A stretch of DNA of 64,000 nucleotides from Octopus sinensis (lineage: Eukaryota), in assembly GCF_006345805.1 (NCBI RefSeq), contig NC_043002.1, forward strand, positions 69,440,001 through 69,504,000, given 5' to 3'. Positions within the stretch are counted from its first letter, which is position 1. Every line of letters begins with the position of its first letter. The notes under the pieces were generated by a model. That model had not been told where the DNA came from. It ran no database searches and saw only the letters and a program-made list of their open reading frames with translations. Shown piece after piece: positions 39,101-45,100 of the stretch. Made by a program: the position numbers and the translations under genes.

Positions 39101-42100
39101 ATTCTTAGTATACCTTGAACAATAGTGGATTGGAAGAAACTGTAAAGCCCCGGGACAAATGCTTTGAGTACATACACCCCCCTTCCTTTAGATTTCAAAC
39201 ATCAGTATTGGTTTACTGGGGTTACTTCAGTCAACTTAACCCCATTTCTACAAGACCTGCATGTATATTTCTATTTCTTTCTCTCTTATACCAATGTACG
39301 AAATTATTTTTTATAAAATGTATTTATGATATCGTTTCTATTATAGGGAGACGTCGGACCCGCTGGACCAGCTGGACTTGCCGGAGCCAGAGGATCACCC
39401 GTAAGTAGTTTTGGACATACATATAACACGGAATTTATTTCACTGTACAATAAAAATAAACACGACGCAAATGGTAAAAGGCACTTGAGGATTTTCTACT
39501 CTCAGAAGGAGAAAATATATAGAAAGATAGATATATAGATAGACAGACAAATCAATAAATGGAGAGAGAGAGAGAGAGAGAGAGAGAGAGAGAGAGAAGA
39601 GAGAGAGAGACAGAGAGAGACAGAGAGAGAGTGAAAGAGAAGCGGACATTAACATAGCTAAAAGAAAAAAAAATGTAGATCGAGCAATCTTCTGCTTGTA
39701 CGACCGTCTGTATCTCTGAGAATAGCGAAAGAAATCGCTTCATTTTTATTTCTACAAGATGGCGACCAGCAGTTTCCCGGTCCGACCACAACCATTAGCA
39801 ACTCCTTATCGTTTTGTGATGAGTAGGAAAGATGGTAAAAACAAAATTTAATTAAAGAAAGAACCTCCAAAACTGAAGTGTATTTCAAGAGAAGCAAAGT
39901 AGAAAATGCGCAGAGGCGTCCATGTCGCCCCGGAAACGCATAAAGTTTGCAGTGTTTCGGACAACGAACGACCGACTTATGAACTTTTTTAAGCGACCTG
40001 CAAAGCGACCTGCAAAAGGGATAAAAAAAAGAAAAAAAAATCAAGTGCAAAGCTTAAAACTCAGTACGCATGCACACACACATATATGCAACATCCATTA
40101 ATACACTCGTTCGTGTATGTATCTATGCGTATATCTACATATATACCTTTTTCATTGTAGGGACCTGCCGGAATTGTCGGAGTCGACGGATCTCGTGGAC
40201 CATCTGGTTTGAAGGTAAGTTTTTCTATTTACAATAGCATTTAATTATTCATCTTACAACAACCTGTTTTCATTCACACTAAGTAGCTTTTATGACTCTA
40301 CTTACACACACACATATTGGAAAATGTGGGAAATCCTTGGTACTGTTTGGTATATTTGAAAAAAAAAAAAAAGAAAAATAACTTCACTAGTTGGTCTAAT
40401 CAATTTAATTTTCTAATAATATGAATTTACAGTTTGGTGTTTAGATCTAGTAAGTTTTTTGTTAACTTCGGTGAGGAGATTTTTTAACAACGAATCTTTA
40501 AAAAAATATTCCTTACCGAAGTTAAATGAAGAAATTACTAGATCTAAAAACCAAACTGTAAAATTATATTATCAGAAAATTAAATTGATCAGCACTATCA
40601 GGAAGACATTCTTTTCTTCTTTCACACACACACACACACACACACACACACACACACACACACCACACACACACACACATACACGTATATAAAATGTGAA
40701 GGCGCGTGGCCAAGTGGCTCGGCTGTTGCACTCACGATCGGTGGATCATAAGTTCGATTCCCAGACCAGGCGGCGCGTTGTGTTCTTGAACAAAATACTT
40801 TATTTCGGTCAGTGCGGTAATGCTGGCCTGCTCGCCTTGCCAACGGGGTTGCGTCATTCGAAGGCTAAGACGATGCAAATTGCATTGTGGCCAGCGATGT
40901 GTAACAACAACTGATAGCCTGGTCTTGATATATACAAAACATTAAAAACTAAGAATGGAGAATTATACGTCCTCAAAAGCTTGTTTATTACAATATTAAA
41001 TGCCGTGGCTGTGTGGTAAGAAACTTGCTTCTCAACCACATAGTTCCGTCCCATTGTGTGGGACCCTGGGCAAATGTCTTCTACTATAACCTCGAGCCGA
41101 CCAAAGCCTTGTGAGTTGATTTGTTAGACGGAAACTGAAAGTAGTCCGTGGTATGTGTGTGTGTACATATATACATAAACACAAGCACAGACACACAGAC
41201 ACACACACACATATATATGTATATATTTATATGTGTGTGTCTCTGTGTTTGTACTCCACGACTGCTTGACAACCGGCGTTGTTATGCTTACGGCACTGTG
41301 ACTTAGCTGTTCGGCAAAAATATCCGATATAATAAGTACCAGGGTTGAAAACATATGCCCTGAGGTCGATTTATTCGACTAAAACCCATCGAAGCGGTGC
41401 GACAACATGGCCGCAGTCAGATGATTGAAATAAGTAAAAGATAAAAGATATATATATCTATATATCTATATCTATATCTATATATATATATATTATATAT
41501 ATATATATACAAATTGCGTACGTATACACACACACACACACAATTTAGTTCATACATTCTTAATTTATTGAACTAATCACCATTTGATTTTCTATTTTAG
41601 GGTTCCAAAGGACACCGTGGATTTAGTGGACTTCCAGGTTTACCTGGAGCTAAGGTGAGTGTTTCGAAAACTAATTCACAAATAATAGTTTAACTTTCGT
41701 ATATCAAGAAATATGAAGCGGTAACACACCTGTTATTGGGTAATTAGTTGCCATAGTCTTTTAACTCTTGAACCGGTAAATCAGACACGTGTCGTGTGTT
41801 GGCCTTGTATATTAAGTGATACGCTGCAGAATCGTGGAAAGTCTCCGATGATTCGATTGCCAGTTGTAAATGTTTCCTTTTGTTTATGTGGTAAAAAGCT
41901 AATTTCAATGGCACGGCAGTGCAGCCTCTCTCGTAACACGCTTATGAATTTCTGCTTTCTTAAAAGAATAGACATTTCTTCGTTTCTTTTTCTTCACTAT
42001 TTTCGTTTTCCTGCTAAAATGAACGTGTTTATATCCGCATGCATGACTTCTTAAGGATCATTAGTCTATACCACAGGTTCTCAAAGTGAGCGCTACGGCC

Positions 42101-45100
42101 ATACCCCGGCGGGCGTTGAGACGGTCCAGGTGGGCGGTGGGGGAGCCGTAGAGAAAAAGGAGGCGTTAAGAGAAAGGCAGTGAATTGGGGGACGCTATGA
42201 ATTTATCATAATATCATTATAGTATTGTATACAAATTATATAACATTTTATTAAATATCAAATGATTCATAGAATATACAAATTAGTAAAATATAAAATA
42301 TTTATTTATACATAAAAATAGAGATGGGGGCGCTGAGGGAATTATGTAGCCATAAGGTGGGCGGTGGCCCAAAAAGTTTGAGAACCTCTGATCTATACTG
42401 ATGGTTCTCAACCGGGGGTTCATATGGCCCTTGGGTTAAGATTTATCTGCAATATATTGACCATACCTCTACAATATACAAACTATTTTACCAACCACAT
42501 GGTTCCGGGTTCATTCCCACTGCGTGGCACCTTGGGAAGTGTCTTCTGCTAAAGCTTCGGGTCGGCCAAAGCCTTGTGAGTGGATTTGGTTGACGGAAAC
42601 TGAAAGGAGCCCGTCGTATATATATATATATATATATATATATATATTATATATATATATATATACAAATTGCGTACGTATACACACACACACACAATTT
42701 AGTTCATACATTCTTAATTTATTGAACTAATCACCATTTGATTTTCTATTTTAGGGTTCCAAAGGACACCGTGGATTTAGTGGACTTCCAGGTTTACCTG
42801 GAGCTAAGGTGAGTGTTTCGAAAACTAATTCACAAATAATAGTTTAACTTTCGTATATCAAGAAATATGAAGCGGTAACACACCTGTTATTGGGTAATTA
42901 GTTGCCATAGTCTTTTAACTCTTGAACCGGTAAATCAGACACGTGTCGTGTGTTGGCCTTGTATATTAAGTGATACGCTGCAGAATCGTGGAAAGTCTCC
43001 GATGATTCGATTGCCAGTTGTAAATGTTTCCTTTTGTTTATGTGGTAAAAAGCTAATTTCAATGGCACGGCAGTGCAGCCTCTCTCGTAACACGCTTATG
43101 AATTTCTGCTTTCTTAAAAGAATAGACATTTCTTCGTTTCTTTTTCTTCACTATTTTCGTTTTCCTGCTAAAATGAACGTGTTTATATCCGCATGCATGA
43201 CTTCTTAGGATCATTAGTCTATACCACAGGTTCTCAAGTGAGCGCTACGGCCATACCCCGGCGGGCGTTGAGACGGTCCAGGTGGGCGGTGGGGGAGCCG
43301 TAGAGAAAAAGGAGGCGTTAAGAGAAAGGCAGTGAATTGGGGGACGCTATGAATTTATCATAATATCATTATAGTATTGTATACAATTATATAACATTTT
43401 ATTAAATATCAAATGATTCATAGAATATACAAATTAGTAAAATATAAAATATTTATTTATACATAAAAATAGAGATGGGGGCGCTGAGGGAATTATGTAG
43501 CCATAAGGTGGGCGGTGGCCCAAAAAGTTTGAGAACCTCTGATCTATACTGATGGTTCTCAACCGGGGGTTCATATGGCCCTTGGGTTAAGATTTATCTG
43601 CAATATATTGACCATACCTCTACAATATACAAACTATTTTACCAACCACATGGTTCCGGGTTCATTCCCACTGCGTGGCACCTTGGGAAGTGTCTTCTGC
43701 TAAAGCTTCGGGTCGGCCAAAGCCTTGTGAGTGGATTTGGTTGACGGAAACTGAAAGGAGCCCGTCGTATATATATATATATATATATATATATATATAT
43801 ACATATATATGTATGTATGTATGTATGTATGTATGTGTGTGTATTTGTTTGTGTGCCTGTGTTTGTCTCCCTCCTCATCGCTTGACAACCGATGGTGGTG
43901 TGTTTACGTCCCCGCAACTTAGCGGTTCGGCAAAAGGAGTCCGATAGAATAAGTACTAGGCTTACAAAGAATAAGTCCTGGTGTCGATTTGCTCGACTAA
44001 AGGCAGTGCTCCAGCATGGCCACAGTCAAATGACTGAAACAAGTATGAGTGAAAGTGAGAGAGAGTATACAATACACAAATTATTTTAACTTTTTTAATA
44101 CAATTTCTAATAATATTTAATTATAAAAATATGATAGGACTTTTTAAGCATTGAATGGATATGAGGGTTCACACGAGTAAACTAGGAATCAGATAGGTAA
44201 AAAAAAAATGTTTGAGGAACAATGGTCTATACCAGTGGATCCCCAAATGGGCGGTGTTGAAGAAAAATGGGGTAGCCAAAAAAGGGGCGATGGATGTAAA
44301 AACAAAATGATGGATTCATTAGGTTGAGTTTTATTTGTGAAATACAGTTGTTTTGAATTTGCTTAGTGGTCTACGTTTGTGGTGGTGAATGGAGATGGGG
44401 GCGCTTAGAATGGTACCCAGATGCCAAGGGGGCGGCAACCCGAAAAAGTTTGGGAACCACTGGTCTATACAGATGCATATAAGTCTGTATGTATGTGTGT
44501 GTGTGTGTGCGTGTGTGTGTGTGTGTGTGAAACTACTCCTAAAAATATAAGCATTTATTGTAACAGTGTTTCTTTTCGCTTTTTCCCCCACATAGGGAAA
44601 TGATGGAGAGATCGGTACTCCAGGACCACCAGGACCTCCCGGACCCATGGTAAGTATTTGTTGTAAATTAAAAAAATATTTCTTGTAATTCTTTCATTTT
44701 TTTTAATGTATATTTCTGAAGATCATGAGCAGTGCTGGTTAAAATCAAAGTTGTAAATGATGATAAGAAATAGTTTTGTTGTTAACTTTTTTCGTAATAA
44801 TAATATTGTATTGTATTACTGTTAATTGAATACCATTAGAAACGTTAAATATAACTACTTTCTTTGCCTAGTTTTGAAAATTCAAATCAGGAAATAATCT
44901 TTTATGCAATCACTTGATTTGCTAGAAATAGGATCTAACGGCTTAAAAAGGAACACACTTCGAAATGTAATCCTAATATACTGTATCTGAAAAGAAAAAA
45001 AAAATGAAGTATTCATAAATTGGAAATGTTTGATCTTAGCAGATCTTAATCAGCACTGACCTGGAGCTGAACAACACTTATATATATTCTACACTGGTAG

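Follow-up and report, generated by a model that had tools for sequence, protein, structure and literature searches.

In the reference assembly of Octopus sinensis, a fibrillar collagen gene contains the exon for the helical cross-link lysine K930 twice, on two tandem copies of one unit. We consider the second cross-link exon to be probably a false exon gain, that is, the product of a 1.15-kb false tandem duplication from the PacBio long-read assembly, and assign this reading a probability of about 0.62. That the assembler and not the animal made the duplication is something we infer, as is the polishing scenario set out below. The window analysed here, NC_043002.1 (C6) 69,440,001-69,504,000 (64 kb), was studied by sequence only, with a splicing model derived from Gly-X-Y (G-X-Y) runs and AG/GT boundaries; the assembly searched comprises 2,719,151,902 bases in 13,516 sequences. 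A first-pass annotation of the window had proposed mis-assembly, a very recent allele or nascent mutually exclusive exons as explanations of the doubled exon. Its leaning towards mis-assembly is supported by one-sided, error-like differences between the copies, by a second event nearby and by an excess of duplicated single-copy genes in this assembly, whereas the proposal of mutually exclusive exons found no support.

Anatomy of the duplicated unit

The two copies and their immediate surroundings consist of the following features.

41033-41436, plus strand: SINE-A, a complete, tRNA-like short interspersed nuclear element (SINE) with an internal (CA/TA)n microsatellite, upstream of copy 1 (full-length alignment, 71% identity to SINE-B)
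41440-41510, unstranded: left-boundary (TA)n tract with the left breakpoint, TATC-interrupted and then pure, with one TT interruption (read directly from the sequence)
41511-42617, plus strand: copy 1 of the duplicated unit, 1,107 bp, with intron tail, cross-link exon, intron with an element resembling a miniature inverted-repeat transposable element (MITE), and SINE-B 5′ half (pairwise alignment)
41601-41654, plus strand: cross-link exon copy 1, 54 bp, phase 0, K930 (G-X-Y scan and splice-site context)
42060-42410, with a second instance at 43213-43561, plus strand: MITE-like repeat, ~340 bp, with terminal inverted repeats GGTTCTCAAAGTG ... CTTTGAGAACC (genomic copies, 8 aligned)
42618-42664, unstranded: junction (TA)n tract between the copies; its left part continues the SINE-B 5′ half and its right part has the TT interruption of the left-boundary tract
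42665-43767, plus strand: copy 2 of the duplicated unit, 1,103 bp, with one AC unit and three single A fewer than copy 1 (pairwise alignment)
42755-42808, plus strand: cross-link exon copy 2, with the same 54 bp and splice sites; the second KGHR would be residue 948 (G-X-Y scan and splice-site context)
43643-44045, plus strand: SINE-B, complete, with 5′ half, (TA)n(TATG)n(TG)n microsatellite containing the right breakpoint, and 3′ half (end-to-end alignment with SINE-A)

Local alignment pairs 41461-42664 with 42617-43814, and the non-microsatellite part of this match is 41511-42617 versus 42665-43767. As stated in the first-pass annotation, the cross-link exon occurs at 41601 and at 42755 and has the same splice sites in both places: the copies agree in all 22 nt leading up to the AG acceptor and in the 10 nt that follow the GT donor, and acceptor (tttgattttctattttag) and donor (AAG/gtgagt) are consensus-like in each. 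The unit is the only near-identical repeat within the window, the next best match reaching 90% identity over 242 bp. A third copy of the unit was sought in the 2.72-Gb assembly and none was found; only its inner parts, MITE-like and SINE, have further matches, of 80-89% identity, and the MITE-like repeat has more than 40 genomic copies of this identity across chromosomes and in both orientations. An exact look-up of the 86-amino-acid (aa) intronic open reading frame (ORF) of the unit in public contigs, from which near genomes may be left out, returned no record. A chance origin of the repeat was rejected, as a 1.1-kb identity cannot arise by chance.

One breakpoint is located in the internal TA tract of SINE-B and the other in the TA tract behind SINE-A. 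Both thus fall into tracts of the same motif, and the junction tract at 42618-42664 is a hybrid of the upstream TA tract and the SINE-B internal TA tract, which is the structure expected of a microsatellite-mediated duplication. All remaining mismatches between the copies are confined to the bounding (TA)n tracts. The 5′ half of SINE-B ends both copies (42492-42617 and 43643-43767) and there is one 3′ half only, which dates the duplication of the unit to after the insertion of the SINE. The 5′ part of SINE-A also matches 42530-42642 and 43681-43793.

This breakpoint structure does not discriminate between animal and assembler, since it is equally expected from unequal exchange and from an assembler that joins pieces through the wrong TA tract. 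It would also be left by a real, very young, probably polymorphic and perhaps heterozygous tandem duplication that arose by unequal exchange or slippage between the TA tracts behind SINE-A and inside SINE-B. We hold such an event, the main rival of an assembly error, to be possible but rather unlikely. It is consistent with the two breakpoints in same-motif microsatellites, with a doubled SINE-B 5′ half next to a single 3′ half, with a junction free of any assembly gap, and with the identical, consensus-like acceptor and donor of both exon copies.

The SINE family to which SINE-A and SINE-B belong (41033-41436, 43643-44045 and a further member at 7250-7487) is characterized by a tRNA-like 5′ half with a GGTTCCGGGTTCATTCCC box, a variable internal microsatellite and a conserved 3′ half; the match of the SINE-B 3′ half to 7250-7487 amounts to 90%.

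Differences between the two copies

The first-pass annotation had described TA-bounded copies that differ by three 1-bp A indels and one CA unit, and alignment of the 1,107-bp non-microsatellite part confirms this, with 0 substitutions and 4 indels of just this kind. Copy 2 lacks one AC unit of the (AC)n run (41526-41527) and has lost a single A opposite 42053, 42083 and 42233. At the A losses, the states of copy 1 and copy 2 are TTAAGG/TTAGG, CTCAAAGT/CTCAAGT and ACAAATT/ACAATT, respectively, the variant strings of copy 2 being TTAGG, CTCAAGTG and ACAATT. In all four cases it is the downstream copy that has lost sequence. The indels opposite 42083 and 42233, two of the three 1-bp ones, lie inside the MITE-like element and can be polarized: among the eight aligned family copies, the same-orientation members (5/5) carry AAA at both sites, as does copy 1, and the deletions in copy 2 are therefore derived.

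Differences of this type are unusual in their surroundings. Within a sample of 264 kb, consisting of the window and 200 kb to its left, the other tandem repeats display 202 substitutions versus 16 indels (~12 substitutions per indel), a ratio at which three indels among three differences have a probability of ~4e-4. Owing to this value, the lack of substitutions and the one-sided losses, the differences look like consensus errors and not like mutations, so that the two copies would be effectively identical. The indel density of copy 2 (3 per 1,107 nt) compares with 0 in the 3,762-nt coding sequence of the collagen gene, which has no frameshift (P ~0.012, a value that is valid if the indels are errors), and this locally high density fits an unpolished stretch. 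Error-type differences, here 1-bp deletions in short A runs of one copy, form the sequence part, as distinct from the k-mer part, of the definition of a 'homotype' false duplication (Ko et al. 2022).

A second tandem duplication and the quality of the assembly

The collagen unit has a single counterpart among the two-copy tandem duplications with a period >700 bp in the 264 kb. This second duplication is positioned at -32002 to -29898 relative to the window (C6:69,407,998-69,410,102), 72 kb upstream and with no gap in between; it has a period of 1,012-1,016 bp, is bounded by (CCA)n/(CAT)n tracts and is unrelated to the collagen unit. Its core of 651 bp is 100% identical between the copies and otherwise unique in the genome, and the sole non-microsatellite difference is a 1-bp loss of C in the downstream copy. 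No two-copy tandem duplication >700 bp with intermediate divergence was present in the 264 kb, the remaining tandem repeats there being satellites of short period whose divergence is of the ordinary kind, rich in substitutions.

A pair of perfect events alike in form, with no older ones beside them, fits a systematic artefact. A natural process matches this picture only if such duplications arise often and vanish before they diverge; a young duplication at the collagen locus would thus require such events to arise implausibly often or to be lost very quickly, and the restriction of the deletions to the downstream copy in both events also speaks against it. Conversely, if both duplications were real, octopus genomes might make ~1-kb microsatellite-bounded tandem duplications at a high rate (two in 264 kb). 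Both periods (~1,016 and ~1,152 bp) come close to a multiple of 256 bp, which one long-read assembler uses as its bin size; this was rejected as evidence, the assembler being unconfirmed.

The assembly as a whole points in the same direction as the local picture. Duplicated benchmarking universal single-copy orthologues (BUSCOs; metazoan set) account for 5.2% in the O. sinensis assembly (Li et al. 2020), compared with 0.5% in O. vulgaris and 0.4% in O. bimaculoides (PMC10700109, Table 2). This approximately ten-fold excess suggests that false duplication is widespread in the O. sinensis assembly. A documented class of assembly errors comprises false exon gains as well as homotype false duplications that stem from long-read errors, its commonest hallmark being an N gap; the same study also met a true allele-specific tandem duplication inside one contig (PMC9516828), a precedent in favour of a young duplication in the octopus.

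An excess of duplicated BUSCOs is, in addition, the usual sign of uncollapsed haplotypes, and together with the unequal microsatellite lengths of the two copies it would accord with a 'heterotype' false duplication, in which two alleles of one locus are placed in tandem. We regard this as very improbable, since alleles of an outbred octopus are expected to differ by substitutions, whereas the 1.1 kb contain no single-nucleotide polymorphisms and only homopolymer deletions; the unit is, moreover, far shorter than typical haplotigs.

Proposed origin of the second copy

According to the favoured explanation, a false exon gain, the real locus would contain one unit composed of SINE-A, (TA)n, intron, the exon GSKGHR…, an intron with the MITE and SINE-B with its internal (TA)n. 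Two overlapping pieces sharing this unit would have been joined via their TA tracts and not merged, either at the layout or consensus stage or when gaps were closed; as there is no N gap, the error would have arisen inside a contig or where a gap had been closed. Reads with a single unit may then, in subsequent long-read polishing, have aligned to the better copy, leaving the other copy with little or no coverage, so that it retained its draft-level 1-bp deletions. An error-free copy beside an error-carrying one would be the expected outcome, because long reads holding one unit would polish the better copy only. If the duplication were true, both copies would be covered and polished by spanning reads.

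Several points weigh against an assembly error. A pair of breakpoints in TA tracts 1.1 kb apart is precisely the outcome expected of unequal exchange or replication slippage. The 264 kb contain no N, neither at nor near the junction, and the gap that most commonly marks false duplications (Ko et al. 2022) is thus missing. The one-sidedness of the losses is based on few events, namely 3+1 single-base indels and 2 microsatellite units. Furthermore, short-read polishing fails in perfect duplicates, and residual errors would consequently persist in a real young duplication too; the 1-bp differences can be read as such consensus errors under that explanation as well.

If the duplication is an artefact, annotations that include both exons give the predicted collagen 18 spurious inserted residues and a second cross-link site that is equally spurious. 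The second event 72 kb away suggests that the widely used O. sinensis reference may in that case hold many microsatellite-bounded ~1-kb false tandem duplications, which would inflate exon and repeat counts.

Helix length and cross-link geometry

A single cross-link exon gives a total of 1014 residues for the helix exons from 7885 through GPSGPS (47981-47998) and a doubled one 1032, as the first-pass annotation had calculated. Numbering of the lysines as K87 and K930, however, requires one extra triplet (GMI), tentatively taken from the junction exon at 3115-3155, which brings the helix to 1017 or 1035 residues. In the one-copy model, the KGHR lysines occupy positions 87 and 930, their spacing of 843 being exact under either helix length. 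K87 is then separated by 944 residues from the C-telopeptide Lys, and the last K lies 88 residues from the end of the helix. The corresponding distance from K87 to the C-telopeptide Lys in human α1(I) is ~943, near four D-periods. With two copies, this distance becomes 962 and KGHR appears at 930 and 948.

The one-copy values agree with those of homologues. Among 33 retrieved homologues with the motif G-x-K-G-H/Q-R/K-G in the last 130 helix residues, the distance from the motif K to the helix end is 88 in 21, 91 in 4 and 85 in 1, and a second motif 18 residues away occurs in 0/33. Because the geometry matches the canonical values and no homologue has two motifs, the canonical protein is predicted to be the one-copy form. 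The earlier claim that the helix has room for one cross-link exon only is hence supported by both the gene-model arithmetic and the homologues. Cephalopod homologues were absent from the matches in a collection of 5.8 billion proteins that leaves out near relatives, both for a C-propeptide query (full-length range) and for a 347-aa query spanning the cross-link exon, the best matches to the latter being ~40% identical.

These data also bear on a real young duplication. As the splice sites are strong and identical, lie ~1,100 nt apart and keep the frame, a real duplication would be expected to yield a longer chain: both exons would be spliced in, which adds 18 residues and places KGHR at 930 and 948. 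Such a protein would have the K87-to-C-telopeptide distance of 962 in place of 944 and a motif pair seen in no homologue. In-frame duplications in the helices of vertebrate fibrillar collagens are dominant and pathogenic, and a common allele of this kind would accordingly be unexpected. That the duplication is real and expressed, so that some O. sinensis carry a fibrillar collagen allele with a helix longer by 18 residues and two KGHR sites, therefore appears doubtful to us, slightly more so than the existence of a real duplication as such. If it holds true, it would be a rare case in nature of a fibrillar collagen that tolerates an in-frame duplication of a helix exon, of a kind that is dominant-lethal in vertebrates, and would help to judge how strictly helix length is constrained by the 4D cross-link register outside vertebrates.

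A mature chain with a single cross-link exon might alternatively result from an older duplication whose copies are homogenized by gene conversion, or from a mutually exclusive exon pair, the latter having been suggested in nascent form by the first-pass annotation. The two exons indeed have the same length and phase, and either alone gives the canonical 1017-residue helix. The identity, however, spans the full 1.1 kb including intron, MITE and SINE and not the exon alone, and identical exons offer no functional choice. Neither is there a mechanism of exclusivity, as the intron of ~1,100 nt imposes none, the splice sites do not differ and inclusion of both exons preserves the frame; the duplicated motif is, again, found in 0/33 motif-bearing homologues. 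We consider this explanation highly implausible, and the suggestion of nascent exclusive exons has nothing to support it.

Comparison with known systems

The octopus case resembles false exon gains and homotype false duplications (Ko et al. 2022, Genome Biol 23:205; Rhie et al. 2021) in that an exon is doubled in an otherwise normal gene on the same scaffold, the copies are near-identical with error-type indels only, and the assembly has an excess of duplicated BUSCOs. It differs in the absence of an N gap and in a unit of just 1.15 kb; in addition, the published class is defined by read depth at or below haploid level and by k-mer multiplicity, the octopus case by its nucleotide sequence.

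With vertebrate COL1A1, COL2A1 and COL3A1, the octopus gene shares phase-0 exons based on 54 bp (45, 54, 99, 108 and 162 bp), a COLFI C-propeptide, KGHR at helix positions 87 and 930, and the location of K930 on its own 54-bp exon. In contrast to these genes, it has fused exons of 243 and 216 bp, one G-X-Y imperfection, exons of 72, 36 and 36 bp at the helix end, 1017 instead of 1014 residues by model, and no Lys in the tentative N-telopeptide.

In-frame tandem duplications of human COL1A1, which arise by homology-mediated exon-exon recombination and cause lethal osteogenesis imperfecta, have been proven in patients' DNA and protein. Like these, the octopus duplication would add a whole G-X-Y exon in frame to a fibrillar helix; the human events recombine between similar exons, whereas the octopus breakpoints are intronic microsatellites and the allele is putative. 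Mutually exclusive tandem exon pairs are likewise tandem and of equal length and phase, but the octopus copies are identical, are separated by a long intron and lack a mechanism of exclusivity.

The collagen gene and its surroundings

The part of the gene inside the window comprises the following features, all taken from the spliced model unless indicated otherwise.

943-54300, plus strand: fibrillar collagen gene, part inside the window, with AG/GT at every boundary
Also within 943-54300, plus strand: N-propeptide minor-helix exons
3115-3155, plus strand: tentative N-telopeptide/junction exon, 41 nt, joined to the phase-1 donor at 2396 of exon 2342-2396 (splice-site and phase logic only)
Within 943-54300, plus strand: 37 distinct helix exons, 38 counting the duplicate
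10834-10887, plus strand: exon with the N-terminal helical cross-link site GPKGHR, K87 (G-X-Y exon model, helix numbering)
40161-40214, plus strand: helix exon flanking the duplication upstream (G-X-Y scan, splice-site context)
44596-44649, plus strand: helix exon flanking the duplication downstream (G-X-Y scan, splice-site context)
47981-48058, plus strand: C-telopeptide exon
49803-49935, 50655-50752, 51421-51486, 52904-53119 and 54154-54300, plus strand: C-propeptide exons, with the stop at 54300

A six-frame scan of the window detected 41 G-X-Y runs on the plus strand and 2 short chance runs on the minus strand. Each of the 38 helix exons begins with a Gly codon and ends with a Y residue, is preceded by AG and followed by GT, and is in phase 0; the sizes of 36, 45, 54, 72, 99, 108, 162, 216 and 243 bp are all multiples of 9. 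A Pfam search of the spliced product identified a Collagen domain (PF01391, E=3e-17) and a complete COLFI domain (PF01410, E=2.5e-61, profile positions 4-233 of 233), and the arrangement of a helix followed by COLFI (NC1) is that of a fibrillar collagen. Judged from the spliced model, the underlying gene is an ordinary, intact and well-conserved fibrillar collagen. The pattern G-x-K-G-H-R-G-F-x-G matches only the two exon copies genome-wide, which leaves no paralogue for comparison. A crude scan of the left flank for Cys-rich ORFs, aimed at signal peptide and VWC 5′ exons, gave no convincing candidate.

Some helix exons deviate from the common pattern. The 243-bp exon at 12493-12735 (81 residues) is unusually long and apparently a fusion of several 54-bp-type exons via intron loss. 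The 216-bp exon at 29180-29395 contains the sole G-X-Y imperfection of the helix (GPK-PEK-GAR, with Pro at a Gly position). At the C-terminal end of the helix (45551-47187), the exon sizes are 72, 36 and 36 bp as opposed to the vertebrate 108/54 pattern, although the distance from K930 to the helix end is conserved. The translation of the tentative N-telopeptide/junction exon (3115-3155) has no lysine; if this exon is correctly assigned, the chain would be unable to supply an N-telopeptide partner for the K930 cross-link.

Downstream of the collagen gene, at 61600-64000, long plus-strand ORFs resemble a retrotransposon of the type without long terminal repeats (non-LTR); a stretch similar to reverse transcriptase contains 'YMDDLKL', and the element runs past the end of the window.

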